Below, piece after piece: positions 31,027 through 57,185 of a DNA stretch of 64,000 bases. Each line of letters opens with the position of its first letter. Position 1 is the first letter of the stretch. Source of the stretch: Sminthopsis crassicaudata. Taxonomy: Eukaryota. Below the pieces are notes generated by a model. The model did not search any database, was not told the DNA's origin, and saw only the letters and a list, made by a program, of their open reading frames with translations. Made by a program: the position numbers and the translations under genes. The DNA is taken from positions 1,006,454-1,070,453 of the forward strand of contig NC_133619.1 of NCBI RefSeq assembly GCF_048593235.1. Direction: 5' to 3'.

Positions 31027-32991
<1,965 letters not shown>

Positions 32992-33296
32992 TCAGGGAGA
33001 GAGAACTTAGGGGGAAGGCTCCACGCGGCCCTTCTCCTCCTTCCAAGCACGGACCCCTCCCCCAGGACTCGCCGTTTTCGGAGGGAGAGCAGACGCTCGC
33101 GGCCCGCCCCACGTGTCAGGCCGGGGGCGGCGCAGCTCGGAGCCCCTGCCCGGAGAGGAGGCCCAGCGCGGGGGAAGGTGACCGAGCGCTCCGCAGCCTC
33201 ATCGGCTCCCGGAGAAAGAGGGAGGCCAGACTCCTGACCTCTAACCCCCCATGACCCTGGGGGGGAGGGAAGACTCCCGGGTCCCGCGGGTGTTAC

Positions 33297-44850: not shown

Positions 44851-47800
44851 ATGGCGGCTGCCGGCGGCGACGCCCCAGCTGGCTACGTGTTGGGCCTAGA
44901 CCTGGGCACCACGTCCGTGAAGGCGGTGCTACTGGAGGCCGGGCCGCATCCAGAGCCCCCGATGCCCGCGGCCAGCGCCAGCCAGGCCACGGGAGCCGAC
45001 GTGGTCCCGAGCGGGGGGGCCGGGCCCGAGGTGAGCACCTGCCCCTCCCCCTCGGCTCCTGGGCGGGGCCTGGGTGCCCTTTGGACCCCCCGGGGGGAGG
45101 AGCTGGGGGCGGGGCCTGGAAACCTGGGCTCCCTGGGGCTGGGGGCCTCCCTCTCTGGCCTCCCAATCCCGGCCCAGCCCGGGCTTCGAGGCTGATGGGC
45201 CGCGTCCTGGGGGTGGCGGGCAAAGGCCCAGGCCTGGTGCCTGGGCTGTCACTTCCCTCCCCCTCCGACCCAAGGGGAGGGCCAGCTCCAGCTTGTCTGC
45301 CGCTGCCCACCCCGGGGGCTTGTGGGAGACCCCCTCCGGAATGAGTCCGGGCCGCTGCTGCCGAGGGACCCTGGAGGGAGACCCCCCCCCAATCAGGCGC
45401 GAGCTCCGCCCCCAGCACGGCCTCTGACCAACCGCCCCAGAGCGAGGCTGAAGAGGTGTAGATTTTGGAGAACCCAGTGAGATGAGAGTCTTGGGGGTCA
45501 GGAAGTTAGACGCGGCCTAGGGGCAGGTTTGGCTCCCCTGCCCCTCCCCCCCATTTGGGGCAAGGGCAGGAGTTCTGGGGCCCCTTGGGATCCTCTTTGA
45601 AGGAACGAACAGCCCGGAAAGCCTGCACTGATGGAGGAGGTTTATTTGGGGACCAGAAGCATGAAGTCTGGTTAAAGAAACAGCTAAGGAGAGGGGGGCG
45701 CCAGAAGCAGGGGCCCAGCGGGCAGAGGCCCTTGGTGCCAGGCTGCCATGCTCAGGACCTCTGCCAAGACAGGGTTCTATTTGTTTTTGTTTTTATTAAT
45801 TTTATAATTATAATTATAACATTTTTTGACAGTACATGTGCCTGGGTGATTTTTTTTTTTTTACAACATTATCCCTTGTTCTCCCTCCTGTTCCCCTCCC
45901 CCAGAGGGAGTCCCATACATGTTACATGTGTTCCAGTATATCCTAGATGCGATATATCTGGGCAGAACCGAAGTTCTTGTTGCACAGGAAGGACCGGATT
46001 CAGAAGTAAAAATGACCTGGGAAGAAAAACCAAAGTGCAAACACTTTACACTCACTTCCCAGCGTTCCTTGTCTGGGTGTGGCTGCTTCTGCCCATCACT
46101 GATCTGACTTAGATCTTCTCTGTGTGGAAAACATCCACTTCCCTCAGCTCCCGGCCTGATACTGTATCCAGGCTGAAATGTACACAGATCTCCTGGGGCC
46201 AACGGTTTTAGCTCCTCCTCCTTTACCGGGAGAGGTTTGGCCCAAGGGCCGGGACAGAGTCCCAGGTTGGCTCAGGCCCCGGGGGCTGGGAGGGCTCCAT
46301 CTCCTGTGGGAATTCCAAGGGTGCTTTTTCCCTGGATTTGTGAATCAAAGGCCCAGGAGGGGCTGAGGACCCAGAAGGAATAAATGAATCTGAAAGGAAT
46401 CATTTGTGCTGCTAATTAAAGGGACCACTACTGGCTTCAAAGTCTCCTGGTCCTGGCCCCAGGGGAAGGGGCTTCCATCCCCCACTGGATGCTGCAGGGC
46501 CCTGATTGGGCTCAGGGGCTTTAAGCGGGGCTCCCCCCCCCCAGGAAGAGCAGATGCCCTTTGGGTGGACCCCGAGCCCCCGCTTGAGGAGCCACTGGGT
46601 CCCAAAGAACCAGAGGAGGCCACGGTCCCAGTTGGAGCACAACCCAGACGTGAGCAGAATCCATGCCAGGAAGAGGAGGAGCCGGATCAGGGGGCCTGGA
46701 GGAAGGAACGGGGCCCTGGGCACTGCCCACCCCAGGCTCGGTTCTCGGCTTTGTCCGCCACCAGCCTCTGGGGGTGTTACTGGCTTCCCTTCTGCTGCTG
46801 GGGCTTCTCCCCAGAGCATGCAGTAGGCACTTACTCTATGCACAGCTCTCCTTCACACACACTGGAAACAGGCTCAGGCGGAGTCCTGTTGGAGGCGAGA
46901 GCGGGGGTGCACACGTGGGGGGGTCCTCTGGGGCTCTGAGGACCCACGCTGAGCCCCTCGTGTCCCCAGGGCCGGGAGCAGGACGTGTGCAGGATCCTGG
47001 GGGCTCTGAACAAGTGTCTCGGGGCTCTGCCGGCGTGGCAGCTGCGGAGGGTCCGCTGCATCGGCGTGGCAGGACAGATGCATGGGGTTATGTTTTGGAA
47101 CTGCAGCCACGGTAACCAGCCACGAGCCCCACAGACAGGGTCCCCGTGTCAGGGAGGGGGCCACGGCTCAGGCTGGAGGTCCAGGTCCAGTTTCGGGGGC
47201 AGGGCTGCCCTGGTTCCCTCTTCTTCATCCCTCCCTGGGCCGAGGCCACAGCCCAGGAGCTCCAGTGTGGGGCCGGCGTCTCTGTGCATGGGGGGGCTTC
47301 CCTTCCTCTTGGTGTCACGCTTGGGCCGGAGGCCGTCCCCACTTTCCCCAAGCTCCCCGCCTTTTTCTGTTCCCTTGCTGCTGAGCCCAGCCTCTGGCCG
47401 CTTCAGGGCATCAAGCTCATGCTGTCCCCCACCTGCCCTGTCCCAGGTGCCCCCTTTTGGGGGTGGAGGAATTGGCTGAGACCCCCGCTCACACCTGAGG
47501 CCTGTCGTGGGGCCCCGGGAAGAGGGGTCGGGGAGGATGTGGCTCACGTGTCCGGGCCATGGCTCGTTTCAGCTTGCACTTGGGCGGAGAGGGGCCCCCA
47601 CAGCGTCTTTGAGCCGCAGCACGTCAGCCACCTGGTCACCTGGCAGGATGGGCGCTGCACCAGCGGCTTCCTGGCGTCCCTCCCGCGGCCCGAGTCCCAC
47701 CTGAGTGTGGCAACGGGATTCGGCTGCGCCACCATCTACTGGCTGTCGCGCCACAGGTGGGCCCTCGGCTCCTGGGGAGGGCCTCTTCTTGGGGGGCCAC

Positions 47801-50369
47801 ATCAGATGGGCTTTCCCAGGCCCTAGTGTCTGGTTTGGGGAGGACTTTGCTGCTTTCCTTTCACCTGCGGAGGAGCTGGGTCTGGCGGGAACTCAAGGCG
47901 GGAGGGCCTCTGTGTGCCCGGCCGTGCCTGGGGGAAGGCCCCAACCAGGGGGCATTAGCCCAGCTCTGACAAGGGGGCGTTAGCTCGGACACAATGGCCC
48001 TGCCACCCCTGGGGGAAGGCCCCGATCGCGGGCGCTCACTCCGGTTCAGAACTGAGGACGGCCAAACGGGTGACGGCAGTGTCTGCCCACAGCCCTGAGT
48101 TCCTGGTGCCATTCAGCGCGGCAGGCACCATCCAGGACTATGTGGTGGCCATGCTGTGCGGCCTGCAGAGACCCCTCATGTCCGAGCACAACGCCGCCAG
48201 CTGGGGATACTTCAACACCGAACGCCGAAGCTGGAACGCCCGCGTGTGAGTCTGCCTCCGAGGGTCCCGGACACCCCCTGCCCCCCACCCTGCCGGTGGT
48301 CCAGCCCAGACTGTGGGGGAGGGGCGGGCCCAGTTCTGTCCGCCGGCTTTAGGGAGGTCTGCTTTGCAGTTTGGAGGAGTCCGGCTTTCCCACCCACCTG
48401 CTCCCAGACGTGGCCGAGGCCGGCGCCATCGCGGGGACGACCACCCACGAGTGGTTTGGCGTCCCCCAAGGAACCAAGGTTGGCGTGGCCCTGGGGGACC
48501 TCCAGTGTTCCGTGTTCTCCTGCATGTCGCGGAGCACAGACGCAGGTGAGAGCGGGCGGCGTCTGCCCTTCAGCTGGACCGGGCCGGCCTTGTTCCTTCA
48601 GAACCAGGCAGTTCCAGGAAAAGGCCAGCGAGAGCCGCAGGGCGCCGCGATCACGTGAGCGTTGGAAGGGGCATGACCCGCCCCTCGCCAGCCTCACGGG
48701 GGAGCTGCGCTCACGGCTGGGCAGCTCGAGGGGATGCCTGGGAGCCCCGCCCTTGCCCTTGCCCCCCTGGCCACGGGGCCGGCCCTGACGCCCGCTTCTC
48801 TGGCTGCCCAGTCCTCAACGTCAGCACCTCCGTCCAGCTGGCGGCCTCCATGCCGCCCGGGTTTAAGCCTGCGGAACTCCCAGAGCCCTCGGCCCCAGTG
48901 GCTTACTTCCCCTACTTCGGCCGGACCTACTTGGGCGTCGCCGCGTCCCTCAACGGCGGCAACGTGCTGGCCACCTTCGTCACTATGCTGGCCCAGTGGA
49001 TGGCGGACCTGGGTGAGTCGACTCCAGGGCAGGCAATCGTGAAGGAAAGGGGGCCGCGGGGGCCGGCCTCACCCCTTTCCCAAGCGGCAGCGACAGGCAG
49101 TGGCCCAAGCCCCCGGCAGCCCCCTGGGTGCTTGTGGGAGTTGCTGGTCCCCGTGCCCGCTGCTGGTGCGCTCCAAGGCCTCTGCGGTGGGTGGTGCCCG
49201 TCCAATCTGACTGCCATTGCTGGAGCCCAGCTTGAGCTCCAGCCCCCCAGGACTTCCAGGAGAGACCCCAGAGGGGACATGGAGACACTGCTCCCACTTG
49301 GGTTTTGTTCGCAACGTCCCGCCCGTGGGCCCAACTTTGGTTCAAGGGTCTCAGGAAGCTGCGGAGCTAGTCAGTGCCGGACTGGGCCGGCCTCATTCCT
49401 TCCTTTAAACCTGCTTGGGGGCCCAGCCCCATGACGCCTGGAGATGGCTCCACTGGTTATCGGCCTGGGTGGGAGGGAGAAGCGGGCATCATGGGCAGGC
49501 CTGTGCCCGCAGGAGGTGCTGTGGGGGGGGGACTCCCTGGCACAGGGTGTGGTGCAGGGTGAGCCTTTCTCAGCACCAAATCCCCCCCTCCCTCCCCGGA
49601 CTGAGCAAAAGGCTCTGCGATTCCCTTGGCAGGAGCGGACGTCGCGGAGAGCCTGATCTATTCACAGATGATCCAGGCGGCCCTGGTCCAGAAGGACACC
49701 CAGCTCACCATCAGCCCAACGCTCCTGGGAGAGAGACACCTTCCAGACGCGCTGGCGTCCGTGGGCGGCATCTCCCCCTCCGCCCTGTCCCTCGGGCACG
49801 TGAGCAGGGCACTGTGCCGCGGCGTCGTCCGGAACGTCCACGCCATGCTCCCGTCTCAGCGGCTGAAGGAGTGGGGCGTCCAGAGGCTGGTGGGCAGCGG
49901 CAGCGCCCTGGCCAGGAATGAGGTGCTGAGGCAGGAGGTGGAGAGGGCCTTCCCCCTGCCCGTCTCGTACGGCCAGGACGTGGACGCCGCGGCCGGGGCC
50001 GCCCTGGTGATGCTGCGGGAGAGCGCGGGAGGGAGCCAGCTGGCGCGGCCCGCGGCCCCGCTCCTCCCAGTCGTTCGTGACGGTATTCCTGACCTCCGCA
50101 TCCGATTAAGTCCCAAAGGGGCCCCAGATGGCCTTGCAGTAGTAGTGGGGGAGAGGGAGACCCCGAGTTCTGCCTCCACAGCCAGTGTCAAAGGGCCACC
50201 CGGTCAGCCCGGCCGCTCCTTGGGAGCCCCGCTTTTTAGTAATTCCCTCGCAGGCGAGGAGAGGCTGGACACGGCTGTCACGGTTTCTTCCGTGATCTTG
50301 AGCTTCACCTTCCGTTTTGGAAAAGTCCCAGAGGGGGCCGCTGCCGGGTGTGGCACGCTCAGGGGGTGA
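44851..50369 (+). CDS. SHPK: Sedoheptulokinase (CARKL). Exons 44851-45030, 46970-47111, 47573-47756, 48093-48245, 48370-48545, 48812-49012, 49633-50369. 590 aa as read; homology ends near 50036
   Basis: FGGY-family motifs LGLDLGTTSVKA, GQMHGV, LVTWQDGRC, GDLQ, SLNGGNVLA, GSGSAL and DVDAAAGAALVML. Phase-continuous exons with canonical splice sites. Confidence 0.97.
45775..46180 (-). mobile_element. L1 3'-end fragment in SHPK intron 1
   Basis: Reverse complement of the 3' end of the 20572-21769 L1 (poly-T head, CATATATCT, CACTTCCCAG). Confidence 0.8.
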
Positions 50370-53300
50370 GGTGCACCTCAGGAACCCCTGAGTTTGAGCT
50401 GCTGACAGTAGAGCTGGCCCGGGTTCGGGAGGGAGGCTCGACCCCCTGTGGAAAAGTGAACCCGGGCTCCAAGCCCAGAAGACTCCTGCCGGGCCGGGCC
50501 CGAGCCACGTACCCCACGTGCAGCAGGCCCAGTGGGGTGACTGGCCACAGCTGTCAGCCCTGAGGTCCTCGGGGTTGGGGGTGTCCCCAGTGACCCCAGC
50601 CCCCGCATTCACTTGGCCCTTTTCGGGGATGGTCGTTCTCTGGCCAGGTGCCCCTGTGGACGCCCGCTGTTCTTCTTTGCAGACTGACCTGATGAAATCA
50701 ACCACAAAGATCCGAATCTTCGAATAACTTCAATCTTCAACTAGATTAATTTGGGGGTGGGCCGCCGGACGGCTGGTCCGCTGCAGGATGGCCTGAAGGC
50801 CACGAGCCTGGGCATCGGGCCGTGTGAGCAAGAGCTGGAGCGAGGGGGGCTCGGGGCCCAAGAGGAGACTTGGGGGGTCTGCTCAGTGTCGGCAGGACCT
50901 CGAAGCTGTGGAGGAGGGCCTGCTCCGGCTGGGCTGAGAGGGCGGCAGCGCGGCGGTCTGGACTCCCTCGCCCGCTGGCCGCTCCGGATCTGAGTCTTGG
51001 GGACCAATGCCTTGGGTGGGACGGAGCCATCTGAGGCTGAGGGTGGAAGCCAGCGGGCCCTGGGGGGGGGATGATAATTGTCAAGTGATGTTTGTGCTGA
51101 TTAAAGGGGCGAGGCTCCGGACACTCCCCAGGGGTGGCTTTCATTTCACGGTTTGCCATTGGGCGGCACTGGCCGCTCCTTCCCAGTAGGGCCCTCTTCC
51201 TGGCTCGAGGACCCCCCTCACTGAGCAGTGCCCATCCCCCATTGGAAGACCCCCGTATACCTCTCTGAGGAGGATCGCCAGGATGTGGGGAAACCGCTCC
51301 AAGCCCCTGAGGGCCGTGATCCCTCCTCCGGCCAGGGGTCCCAGGCACTTTTGTCTCCCCAAGTCTGCCTTTGAGAGTCCTTCAGGTCTTTGACAGCTGG
51401 GCCTGAGTCCCCCTCCCCCACCTCATGCAGTGCCCTCGGAGGGGTGCCTCTTGCTGCCCTGGGAGCCTCCAGGGCCTGGCCCACCCCGAGCTCTGAGCTC
51501 AGCCGTGTCCCAAACGCCAGCCCCCCCTCGGCTCGGCTTGGTGCCGGCCGCATTCCCTGCTCCTCACCATCGAGCTACGGAGCGGAGGGTTTGGGGGGGG
51601 CCGCTCCCTGGAAGCACCGGGGGGGCCTTCCCCCCGGCCCTCAGACCAGACCAGGCGCCCTTCCTTGTTCCCCGCCCCGGCTGCTGTAGGAAAAGCCCCC
51701 AGAACTTGGGGCCATTTCAAGAACTTTCCTGCCCTGGGCCCTGAGCACAGGGGCTGCTCTGGGGATGTCCAAGGTCCTGAAAACGCCAACTTGTGGATAA
51801 AATAGCAGCGCCCCCCCCCCATCCACTGGCCTGACTCCCCCCCCCCCCTCACGTCCTCGAGGATCCAGGGGAGGTTGCTCACGCTGACCCCACGGGCCTC
51901 ATCGTCCCTCACGCCCGGAGCCAGTTCCACTTCCTGCCTTTTGTGCCACTTGGGTTCTGCCTTAGAGGCTCCTTCAGGTGCCCTCACCCCAAGTGGTCAT
52001 ATATTTTGTGCCCCTCGAGGGCCAACTTCTGGAGTAGAGTTTGGGGGCATGGGGCTGAGGGCGAGGGGCCAGGTGGCCTCGGACGCTCACTAGCCCTGTG
52101 ACCCTGGGCCAGTCACTCGCCCTGCCTGCCTCAGTTTCCCCTTCTGTCCACTGAGCCACCCTCCCCCGTACTCAGCCAGGGAAACCCCAGAGTGGGAAGG
52201 GGGTGCCATGAGGAGCCTGGGCTGGACGAGGCGGCCGGGCCCCGGGGGGCTCCAAGGGCAGCTTCTGCCGCTGGGTCGGCGCTGCAGCCCGGAACCCTGT
52301 GGGTGGGCCAGGGAGTGGGGGCAGGAGGGGGCGGCTGCAGGGTCCTAACGAGTCCCCGGCCACTGGCCTCGCTCCCTCCATTAGGAGCCGGCTCCGCTCT
52401 CGGGCTGATCGGGCCAAAGGTGAGGGAGGCAGGGAAGCTCCTTGGGGGTTCAGGCGAATCGGGCAGATCAATTAAGACCATCCCTGGTCCCGAAAACATT
52501 TTCCCAGCCCCGGCCTCCCCCCCTCCCGTTCCTGGACTCCCCGCTCTGGCCCTGCCTGCCCGGGGGTGGGTTGGCCCCCAGAGAAAATCTGCTGTCCTGC
52601 CGGATCAGTTCTTGGGAAGACAGAGTGGAAGTCCCGGAACCGAGCGGACCTAGAGGCCGAAAGCCTCTTGTACTGTGTGGGCCGAGGCATTGAGGGCCCC
52701 CAGAGGGATGAAGGTCACAAAGGCCCTTGGGGAGGGAGTGGCCAGTATGGATGGAGATGGTGGGAAGAGCTGACCTCTGACCTCTGACCTGGGCTCCTGC
52801 TCGGCCCATCCCCACCTCCACGCAGCTGAGACCCAGTTGCCCCTTCCCCCATAATGTATTCCAGCACCTCCGGGGCAAAGAGTAGTTGTTTGTTAAGGCC
52901 CCCCCCCCCCACTATTCCAGGCTCTGCGCCTGGTGGGGGGGAGGGGGCCGAGGACAATCTGCAGGGAATGAGCCCCCCCCCCAGACTAGGAAGGAGAAGA
53001 GAGCAACAAAGCCGAGCTTGGCCTTCCAGCCAGTCAGGGGGAGGGGCCCCCTAGCTGCATTGGGAAGCCCTGGGGAGGAGGGGGGAGGGCATTGCAAGCC
53101 TAGGGGACGCAGCTGGAAAGGAACCAGGGAGGCCGGCTTGCTGACCAGTGTGGAAAGATGGGTTCCCATGGGAGCACTTGGAAGCTAAACTGAGGGTTTC
53201 TTGGGGCCCCTCGAAGGAGAGGGCGCCCCTGGTGGGGACCGAGGAGGGGCGGAGCAGCCCAGAAGTCACTGGAGGGGCCGGGGGTCGCCAAGGGAGCCGA

Positions 53301-54959
53301 GCAGGCTGGGCCAGAAGGGGGGAGCTAAGCCCAGGCCTCTGTGCTCCCCTTGTCCGCCCTCCCGGAGGGAGCTCAGGCCCCCGCTGGGCAGGTGCCGCCC
53401 CCCTCACCTGTGTTTGCCGAGGGCTGTTTATTCGAGGACCTCTCTCCCTAGGAGCCACTTCCTGCCCATTCTTGGCCGGGCCCCTAAGCCCCCAGTCCCA
53501 GGGACACACAATAGGGGCCGGATGGTTTTCTCAGGTGGGGACACATTTAGGCTCATTGTGAAGGGTTTCTGAGAGGGGGAGGGGAGTTGTAGCTCAGGCC
53601 AGACCCACCCGCCCTGGTGTTAACTGGGGCAGGAACCCCCCTTGTCTCCCCTCACAGTGGGACCAAGCCCGGGAGGGGTCACCTGTAAAAGCCTCCGTTT
53701 CCTCCTCTGTGCAAGGAGCGGGGAGAGGGTGCAGGGCCCGGGTGAGGAGCCAGCTTTACCAGCTTTTAGGCACGTCAGGGCCCGCCCTGCTGTAAATGCC
53801 AGGGAGCAGGCGGTCTGGAGCTGGGCTGGCCGCTGACACTCGTTCGCTCCTCTCCCTCCCTTCCCCTTCTCCAGTTCTCCTTTTCTTCCTGGTTTTCTCT
53901 CTGTCTCTCCCTCCCTCCTCTCACCTCCCCTATCTCTCTGTCTCTTATTCTTCCAGTCTCGGTGTCCCGGTGTGTGTCTGTCTCTCCCTCCCGCTCCCCC
54001 TCCTCCCTTCCCCATCCTCTCCCCTGCTGCTGTTGGGCCAGCTGCCCGAGCCTTCCTTAATCTCACTTTATAGGTACATTGGCTCTGCAGCGCCAGAATG
54101 TCTGGCCTCGAAAAGGCGCAGCCTGCAGGGTTCTCTTCTCTTTCCTTCTTTGAGAAGGAGGCATTTGCCCTTTCGGGCCTGTCCCTGGTCGGGTACAAGG
54201 GGTCCCGGTTTGGGAGACAGAAGGCCTGCTCCTGGTATTTTACCCCCCGGGGTAGTGGCTTTAGGCAAATCCTGTTTCCTCTTTGGGCCTCAGTTTCATC
54301 ATTTGTAAACAGGAATAAAAGCACCTACTTAAAACAAACAAAAGTCCTAGCTATATTTTTATGGTTTTTGTTGCTGTCACCATACTAAAAGTGGCTGGAT
54401 GGTTCAGTGGAGAGAGCCACTGGGCCTGGAGTCAGGAAGACCTGAGTTCAAATTTAGCCTCAGTCCCTGGTGTAAACTTTAGAGGGCATTTAGGATTAGG
54501 GCTAATTGAATTCCTGTTTACCTTAATCTGCTGGAGAAGGAGATGACCATCTCCTCCAGTATCTTTGCTATAAACTGCGTAACCCACAGGGTCACCTAGA
54601 CTCAGACACAACAGCAACAAGCGACACTCAAGTCCAAAGCTGCTAAGGGAGAGCTGCCTGCTCGCTGTGCACTAACTAGTGAGGTCACAAAAGCCCCCAC
54701 ATCCTGACTGCAGGTGGAGGTGAGGGAGACGAGACCCAAGCATCTGCAGGAAATGCAATTCAGCTCTAGGAAAGAAGCCCCAAGTCCTGAGTGAGCTGTA
54801 GGTTTGCTAGGGACTGGCATAGTCTAGGCTAGTGGCCAGCTGCGTGGGCACGAGCCAGAAGCACGGCCATGGGGAAACCCAAGGCTTTGGGATAGCACAG
54901 TGAGGGACAGCACGGTGAGGGCTCAGGAAGGGAAGGTGGCTAGGAAAGTAGGAGCCAAT

Positions 54960-55560
54960 CAGACCACGAAGGTCTTGAATCAGTCATTCTGTAAATAAAC
55001 ATTCATAAAGCACCCATGTTGTGTCAGGTACTGTGCCAAGTGCTGAAAGTTAGAGGCAAATGATTGTTCCTGCCCCCAAGGGACTGCAATACTAAACAGC
55101 AGGAAACAGCAGGAAAACAACTGTCTACTAGCAAGTCCTATATAGGAGAAGTGGAAAAACTGCACTGAGGGAAGGCACTAACGTTAAGAAAGGTTGGGAA
55201 AGCTTCTGTGGAAAGTGAGATGTAGTTGGGACTTAAAAGAAGTCAGAGAAGTCAGTAATGGGAGCAGAGTGTTCCAGTCCTTGGGTGAGCCAGGGGACAA
55301 TGTCCAGAGTGGAAAGACACCTTGTTGGCAGGACAGCCAGGAATCCGGGTTCACTGAAGGGAAGAGTACATGGAGGGAAGTGAAGTGTAAGAATCTGGAA
55401 AGGGAGGAGGGGGCAGGTTACGAAGATTTGTGTTTGATCCTGGAGGCCGCAGAGAGCCCCAGGAGTTTGAGTAAAGAGTGGTGTGGTCAGGCCTGCACTT
55501 TAGGAAAATTACTTTAGGGATTGAGCAGAGGATGGGCTGAAGTGAAGGGAGACTCGGGGC
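54960..55560. mobile_element. Decayed L2 fragment (bounds approximate)
   Basis: TAAAGCACCCATGTTGTGTCAGGTACTGTGCCAAGTGCTG and related L2-like motifs. Confidence 0.55.
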
Positions 55561-55659
55561 AGGTAGAGCCTCATCAGCTAGTGCAGTGGTCTTGGTGTGA
55601 AGCGAAAAAGATGGAGGCAGCGACAGAGGATAATGGGAGTTTGACCAGGGAGATGTTGC

Positions 55660-55808
55660 AATTGGCCAGAGGAGAAACTGATGAGGTGAAATCGACCAGA
55701 GAAGCTGCAGAGGTGAAAGTGGCCAGAGGAGATGCAGAAGTGAAATTGGCCAGAGATGATGCAGAGGTGAAATGGACCAGAGAAGCTGCAAAGGTGAAAT
55801 GGACCAAC
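55660..55808 (+). repeat. Degenerate 27-bp tandem repeat (~5-6 copies)
   Basis: Units like GAGGTGAAATGGACCAGAGAAGCTGCA, encoding EVKxxRxxA in one frame. Confidence 0.85.
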
Positions 55809-56029
55809 TGAAAGTTGGAATTGATTAGAGATGCTACAGAGGTCTTGGCACCACATTGAACTGAGGGTGAGAGACAGTAAAAAAAAAAATCCAGGGTGAC
55901 TCCTGGTTGTGAGCCCGGGAGACTGTGAGGGTGGAGGTACCCTGGACTGTAATAGGGAAGGTAAGAGGAGGGGAAGGTTTAGGTAGAAAAAATATGAGTT
56001 CTGTTTTGGACCTGCCTAGCTGGCAGGCA

Positions 56030-57185
56030 ATCCAGTATATGTTAAATACATTGAACTCCATGTTAGATCCAATCCATGTTTATACAATTATCTTGTTGCA
56101 CAAGAAAATTCAGATCAAGAAGGAAGAAAAACTGAGAAAAAAAAATGCAAACAAATAACAGAGAGTGAGAGTGCTGCTATATTGTGTTCCACACTCTGTT
56201 CCTATGATCCTCTCTCTGTGCAGATAGCTCTCTGCATCACTGCATAAGTGGAACTGCTTTGAATAATCTCAATGTTGAAGAGGACCTCGTCCATCAGAAC
56301 TGATCAACGTATAATCTTCTTGTTGCTGTGTACAACAATCTCCTGGTCCTGCTCATTTCACTCAGCATTAGTCCCTGTGAGTCTCCAGGCCTCTCTGAAA
56401 TCTCCTGCTGGTCATTTCTTACAATAATATTCCATCACATTCATATACCACAGTTTACCCAACCATTCTCTAACTGATGGGCAGCCACTCAGTTTCCAGT
56501 TCTTTGCCACAAACATTTTTGCACATTTAGGTCCTTTTCCCTCCTTTAAAGATCTCTGGGATATAAGTCCAGTAGAAACACTGCTGGATTTGGACATAGT
56601 TCCAAATTGCTCTCCAGAATGGTTGGATTCTTTCACAACTCCACCAACAATGCATCAGTGTCCCAGTTTTCCCACATCCCCTCCAACATTCATCATTATT
56701 TGTTCCTGTCATCTTAGCCAATCTGACAGGTGTGTAATGGTATCTCAGAGTTGTCTTAATTTCCATTTCTCTGATCAATAATGACTTGGATCATCTTTTC
56801 ATGTGGCTACAAATAGTTTTAATTTCTTCATCTGAAAATTATCTGTTCATTTCCTTTGACCATTTATCAATTAGAGAATGACTTGAACTATTATAAATTT
56901 GAGTCAATTCTCTACATATTTTGGAAATGAGGCCTTTATCAGATCCTTTGGATGTAAAAATGTTTTCCCAGTTTATTTCTTCCCTTCTAATCTTGTCTGT
57001 ATTAGCTTTGTTTGTACAAAAACCTTTTAACTTGATATAATAAAAATTATCTATTTTGTGATCAATGATAATCTCTAGTTCTTCTTTGGCCACAAATTCC
57101 TTCCTCCTCCGCGGGTCTGAGAGGTAGACTATCCTATGTTCTTCTAATTTGTTTACAGTATCATTCTTTATGTCTAGATCATGAC
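56030..57185 (-). mobile_element. L1 fragment (ORF2 C-terminus plus 3' end)
   Basis: Minus-strand remnants [18 protein letters not shown] and DKGLISKICRELTQIY. Confidence 0.9.

Follow-up and report, generated by a model that had tools for sequence, protein, structure and literature searches.

A 110-codon open reading frame extension of the sedoheptulokinase gene in Sminthopsis crassicaudata, probably a by-product of tail indels and GC enrichment

In a stretch of 64,000 nucleotides from the Sminthopsis crassicaudata contig NC_133619.1 (hereafter the window, whose numbering we use throughout), the reading frame of the sedoheptulokinase gene (SHPK/CARKL, FGGY carbohydrate kinase family) continues without a stop across 110 codons whose counterpart in another marsupial is 3'UTR. 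Our findings favor a model where this extension arose as a by-product of small indels in the C-terminal tail combined with GC enrichment of the locus, and does not represent a new domain; we assign this reading a probability of about 0.65. According to the model, the residues past the conserved ...AALVMLR would form a short tail free to vary between lineages, within which small indels would have shifted translation to a frame other than that of the other marsupial, while the locus turned very GC-rich and lost stop triplets, which are AT-rich. Through these two changes together, the new frame would have come to run open across 110 codons of the relative's 3'UTR, as far as the TGA at 50367.

The gene itself lies on the + strand, where local tblastn with the SHPK proteins of gecko, pig, and aardvark placed seven colinear exons; the orthologues are named sedoheptulokinase by NCBI and UniRef and carry PF00370. 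The exons match the pig (P0253) and aardvark (P0235) proteins in the same order at 61-81% identity, exon 1 more weakly, and each of the seven has GT-AG splice sites and is free of stops in its expected phase, with phases computed exon by exon. The FGGY_N profile (PF00370), also searched exon by exon, gave matches in separate exons to profile positions 1-18, 41-86, and 197-244 in the right order, at a sub-threshold 12-15 bits against a cut-off of 28.8. Together, the seven exons yield an ORF of 1773 nt (590 aa), compared with 476-480 aa in placental SHPK. Given the seven colinear exons, the canonical splice sites, and the 590-codon ORF, the gene looks functional, and its sequence identifies it as an apparently intact sedoheptulokinase. 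Intron 6 (49013-49632) spans about 620 nt, against about 170 nt (positions 31-200) in the contig of the other marsupial. The coding exons are as follows.

44851..45030, + strand: SHPK exon 1, from the ATG (tblastn with pig and aardvark; GT donor; no in-phase stops; sub-threshold FGGY_N 1-18)
46970..47111, + strand: SHPK exon 2 (tblastn; sub-threshold FGGY_N 41-86)
47573..47756, + strand: SHPK exon 3 (73-75% identity to placental SHPK; AG/GT sites; open in phase)
48093..48245, + strand: SHPK exon 4 (tblastn; frame kept only by the donor GTGAGT at 48246)
48370..48545, + strand: SHPK exon 5 (tblastn; sub-threshold FGGY_N 197-244)
48812..49012, + strand: SHPK exon 6 (81% identity to pig SHPK; AG/GT sites)
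49633..50018, + strand: last coding exon (exon 7), conserved part, ending ...AALVMLR (72-73% identity to placental SHPK, 77% to the marsupial protein P0268)

Frame 0 of the last exon is stop-free from 49626 up to the TGA at 50367-50369; programmed translational readthrough therefore does not apply, since no stop codon lies in frame between 49626 and 50367. The first-pass annotation of this DNA had reported 116 residues past AALVMLR, and so we find: CTG CGG (LR) ends at 50018, ESAGGS follows, and the CAG at 50037-50039, directly after Ser, begins 110 further codons. A stop at that CAG would indeed give a protein of 480 aa, as counted over the seven mapped exons, and the extension has the stated length of about 110 aa, with a peptide identical to the letters quoted at the time. 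The features of this end of the gene are these.

50019..50036, + strand: short lineage-variable tail ESAGGS ("ESA.G" common to the other marsupial, ESARGT)
50037..50366, + strand: 110-codon ORF extension (homologous to 3'UTR of the other marsupial; flat GC by codon position; no homologues found)
50367..50369, + strand: first in-frame TGA of the unspliced last exon (from the sequence)
51100..51105, + strand: first ATTAAA downstream of the ORF, candidate polyadenylation signal (from the sequence)

Pro, Gly, Ala, Ser, and Arg together make up 54% of the extension, and its last 30 residues are moderately hydrophobic. A hydrophobic stretch had been noticed before and is present, TAVTVSSVILSFTFRFGKV; its highest 19-residue Kyte-Doolittle mean, 1.16, lies under the usual transmembrane threshold of about 1.6, and we rejected a transmembrane reading of the stretch. 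If translated, the extension would give the enzyme a tail of low complexity in which Gly, Ala, Pro, Ser, and Leu abound; this tail would probably be disordered, with a moderately hydrophobic end.

Searches with the last exon support the first impression that the extension is like no known domain. When the 245-residue translation of the exon was searched with HMMER against 1.84 billion representative proteins, 413 matches came back, the best 150 of which all end at query residues 123-140, that is, at the conserved end or just beyond it. A word search with residues 110-245 of the same translation found no match, and the Pfam and PDB sequence searches of the last exon returned nothing, the conserved part included. 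None of the sequences submitted to exact-sequence look-ups (the ATG-started long ORF, a hypothetical short ORF ending at 50036, and two minus-strand ATG ORFs) is on record; for the long ORF this is uninformative, since the short ORF, the one that a TAG at 50037 would close, is equally absent. A metagenome scan for a third marsupial copy found none.

Compared across lineages, the SHPK C-terminal tail is clearly labile, and its length in S. crassicaudata is an outlier. After the conserved L-R/Q, sauropsids have 2 residues (...RK stop), placentals 8 (tamarin P0270, ...QKES stop), and the marsupial P0268 18, ESARGTADGHQRPCFS, against 116 in S. crassicaudata (ESAGGS + 110). If the count starts at the DAAxGAA motif, the median over 170 sequences is a tail of 7 residues, compared with 121 here, and the only longer tails among those 170 belong to ORF fragments and to one fusion model. 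P0268 was taken as coming from another marsupial because it is the closest sequence found, at 77% identity.

The origin of the extension emerges from the 2-kb Logan contig that encodes P0268 (L001), which runs from the end of exon 6 through intron 6 and exon 7 to 1.4 kb beyond. Positions 50037-50366 align to 604-1076 of that contig, nearly all of it (from 639) past its TAA at 636-638; the earlier claim that 3'UTR was recruited into the ORF thus holds, relative to the one other marsupial sequence compared. Identity is 63% between the extension and this 3'UTR and 58% in the UTR beyond the extension. Ten indels separate the two sequences within the extension (2, 1, 44, 4, 29, 20, 1, 11, 43, and 2 nt), not one of them a multiple of 3, and the homologous span of L001 contains 5-9 stops in each frame. 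The homology to UTR, the frame-breaking indels, and the stops together indicate that the extension is former UTR in which the frame has not been conserved. At its start lies the zone where the two reading frames part.

50034..50048, + strand: two-indel zone relative to L001, with +2 nt near 50035, immediately ahead of CAGCTG, and -1 nt near 50047, some 10 nt past it

The two indels amount to a net +1 that changes the reading frame, in a comparison of two sequences that gives relative differences only. The TAA of L001 aligns to the CAG at 50068-50070, out of frame in S. crassicaudata.

This alignment also bears on the mechanism first put forward, a single T>C change (TAG to CAG) at 50037 that would have abolished an ancestral stop in the S. 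crassicaudata lineage. In its favor, codon 50037 is preceded by Ser, as is the stop of the primate protein P0270, and an end at 50036 would give 480 aa, close to the placental range. The comparisons argue against it. The hexamer CAGCTG (50037-50042) is identical in L001, where it is read in another frame (ACA GCT), and the stop of L001 lies 18 codons past LQ, not 6. In two placental contigs (L002, cetartiodactyl-like, and L003, lagomorph-like; neither looks human), the TAG aligns without gaps to the GCG at 50043-50045, and the CAG at 50037 aligns to an AAG, two codons before their stop. The "Ser-stop" match to human is therefore a coincidence of residues, since the placental TAG falls on the ninth codon after LR and the CAG is the seventh. 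None of the sequences compared has a stop at position 50037. A classic stop-loss by point substitution was accordingly rejected, the CAG not occupying the ancestral stop position in the alignments with L001, L002, and L003, and we regard a single-base loss of this kind as extremely improbable.

Could the open frame instead result from a faulty assembly or consensus, or from a polymorphism, be it a miscalled base at 50037 or an indel error of 1-2 nt in the GC-rich 50020-50060? The stretch where the frames of S. crassicaudata and L001 part is indeed G/C-rich and of low complexity, and the other two frames close soon after the conserved end, with stops at 50078 or 50107 (18-28 residues past LR), where the real protein would then end; the want of an independent record for the long ORF points the same way, except that the short ORF is off record too. 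Sequencing runs speak against such an error. By 31-mer look-up, the stretch 49400-50900 is present in 20 runs from 9 studies; of the 155 31-mers sampled, a run from another sample and another study contains 0.99 and others contain 0.94-0.97, and an error would cost about 3 of these words. With shares of 0.94-0.99, an assembly error at 50030-50050 is unlikely, and we give the artifact explanation as a whole little credit.

The extension resembles UTR and not a coding exon, and has no coding signature. GC at codon positions 1/2/3 is 0.715/0.469/0.915 in the conserved part of exon 7, against 0.682/0.600/0.645 in the extension and 0.691/0.655/0.609 in the next 330 nt of UTR. Nor does purifying selection on the extension, a prospect raised at first pass, leave any sign: all 10 indels relative to L001 break the triplet register, and GC is flat by codon position. 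Such flatness would be expected of young coding sequence too, so function is not excluded by it.

The GC enrichment on which our model relies extends over both exon and UTR. GC is 0.70 in exon 7 and 0.64 in the UTR, versus 0.52 and 0.49, respectively, in L001, and the GC3 of exon 7 is 0.92 versus 0.57. With the two placentals (L002 and L003) as outgroups to polarize lineage-specific changes in exon 7, the S. crassicaudata lineage shows 13 weak-to-strong, no strong-to-weak, and 4 neutral changes, and the L001 lineage 25 strong-to-weak and no weak-to-strong. Across 49633-50740, GC has drifted in opposite directions in the two marsupial lineages. Among mismatches between the two marsupials, those with G/C in S. 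crassicaudata prevail 74 to 23 in the extension and 89 to 38 in the UTR. The enrichment may plausibly stem from GC-biased gene conversion, which would make the locus a candidate hotspot.

In first-order Markov simulations, the probability of a run open for at least 110 codons was 8.6% with the local UTR composition versus 0.34% with that of L001, and runs of at least this length without a stop number 244 in the whole 64-kb window. The openness of the extension is thus not clearly beyond chance. Elsewhere in the window, 31319-33254 (GC 0.72) contains overlapping stop-free runs of 481-563 codons on both strands, so that an open frame means little here; the region may also hold a real intronless gene. 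Runs of N occupy 59362-59721 (360 bases) and 61483-61517 (35 bases).

A chance of 8.6% is nevertheless low enough to keep selection for openness in play, either through a functional tail or through avoidance of nonsense-mediated decay (NMD) by way of a lineage-specific 3'UTR intron. The relevant feature, deduced from sequence motifs, is the following.

50366..50682, + strand: candidate terminal intron (donor GGG/GTGAGG, the slash marking the splice point; acceptor with a pyrimidine tract and CAG at 50680-50682)

The TGA that closes the extension overlaps the good donor motif, and the strong acceptor at 50682 lies in a block kept in L001. If the intron were used, the ORF would end GG/A CTG ACC TGA at 50690-50692, two residues longer. 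A stop at about 50040-50110 would lie some 260-330 nt upstream of the last junction and would thereby be exposed to NMD; a stop at 50367 without splicing, or at 50690 with it, would escape NMD. Word shares bear on this as well: five runs from four studies, of a type guessed to be RNA, contain 0.61-0.62 of the words, with a sampling error of about 0.04, and the expected share is 0.606 for RNA that lacks both intron 6 and 50366-50682, 0.84 if the last exon stays unspliced, and about 0.39 if the extension is spliced out. These shares hint at a mature RNA that includes the extension and at the existence of a terminal intron. Against selection for the frame, the donor is not conserved in L001, the run types are guesses with the error just given, and the tail shows neither a coding signature nor a homologue in the searches made. 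We therefore hold a selected open frame, whatever its cause, to be unlikely; the particular version driven by NMD, where the intron arose in the old 3'UTR and the frame was kept open as far as the junction so that the mRNA escapes decay, we hold to be decidedly unlikely.

The surroundings of the acceptor deserve a description of their own. The segment 50640-50745, aligned with 1480-1560 of L001, is the best-conserved 3' block between both marsupials and consists of a pyrimidine tract and CAG, followed by A(C/A)TGAC(C/T)TGATG...TCAACCA(C/T)AAAGAT. The block has the look of a conserved splice acceptor and the first part of an exon, possibly a 5' non-coding exon of the downstream gene, or else of a UTR regulatory element.

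Another alternative is that the extension goes untranslated in the main isoform, through a different splice or polyadenylation site right after the conserved end. Alternative SHPK C-termini do occur in automated annotations, as in turtle isoforms ending ...RRYKPIVKDCLI and in P0006, a SHPK-TRPV1 fusion model. The S. crassicaudata sequence offers little room for this, with no GT from 50019 to 50069 and no polyA signal before 51100, and no run shows the share of about 0.39 predicted for an extension spliced out. We thus rate it as very improbable. P0006 (531 aa), which would reflect either transcriptional read-through or the merging of two gene models in some non-mammalian vertebrate, has SHPK cut after ...YVMLKRS, a 14-residue linker, and then what reads as a TRPV ankyrin-repeat N-terminal region. 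Like the present case, it marks the 3' end of SHPK as a place where models or transcripts run into downstream sequence; unlike it, P0006 enters conserved coding sequence of a neighbor gene, whereas the extension matches nothing. Local tblastn with the TRPV-like part of P0006 found no TRPV-like exon at 50001-64000 (54271-54314 masked).

Lengthening by UTR-derived sequence is an ordinary kind of event; in SHPK none is known to have been described before. The closest parallel lies in human disease and cancer stop-loss variants, where the C-terminus is likewise lengthened by what is 3'UTR in relatives (PMC11502859, PMC12817085, PMC11817944). Those extensions too are unrelated to any domain and end in a fairly hydrophobic stretch. 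The S. crassicaudata case differs in being a fixed or assembled genome state, neither somatic nor Mendelian, and in its origin, which the alignments place in a frame change within an unconstrained tail and not in the substitution of a stop codon. Proteins with UTR-derived tails are reported to be cleared often, above all if the tail is hydrophobic (PMC10364623; PMC11502859; bioRxiv 10.1101/2022.07.20.500724). According to such accounts, products of readthrough are generally cleared by BAG6 and GCN1 quality control (PMC10364623; bioRxiv 10.1101/2022.07.20.500724), which would by analogy be the likely fate of the 110-residue tail. A tail fixed in the lineage must, however, be at least tolerated, unlike the products that the BAG6/GCN1 pathways clear. 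The tail is presumably translated, and the lengthening would probably be neutral or mildly harmful; by analogy with the stop-loss extensions, a loss of protein stability is more to be expected than a gain of function.

For annotation, these findings are a warning: of the 590 residues in the SHPK model, 110 probably have no function as protein. The case would become more interesting if the frame proved conserved in close relatives, or if the link between a 3'UTR intron and mRNA decay proved true; in the latter event, the coding sequence would have grown under the drive of mRNA surveillance and not of protein function. Overall, we suggest that SHPK of S. crassicaudata exemplifies how 3'UTR can become ORF when a locus grows richer in GC and indels arise in a C-terminal tail free of constraint. 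In the event of translation, the tail could reduce the amount of the enzyme that controls how sedoheptulose enters the non-oxidative pentose-phosphate pathway.
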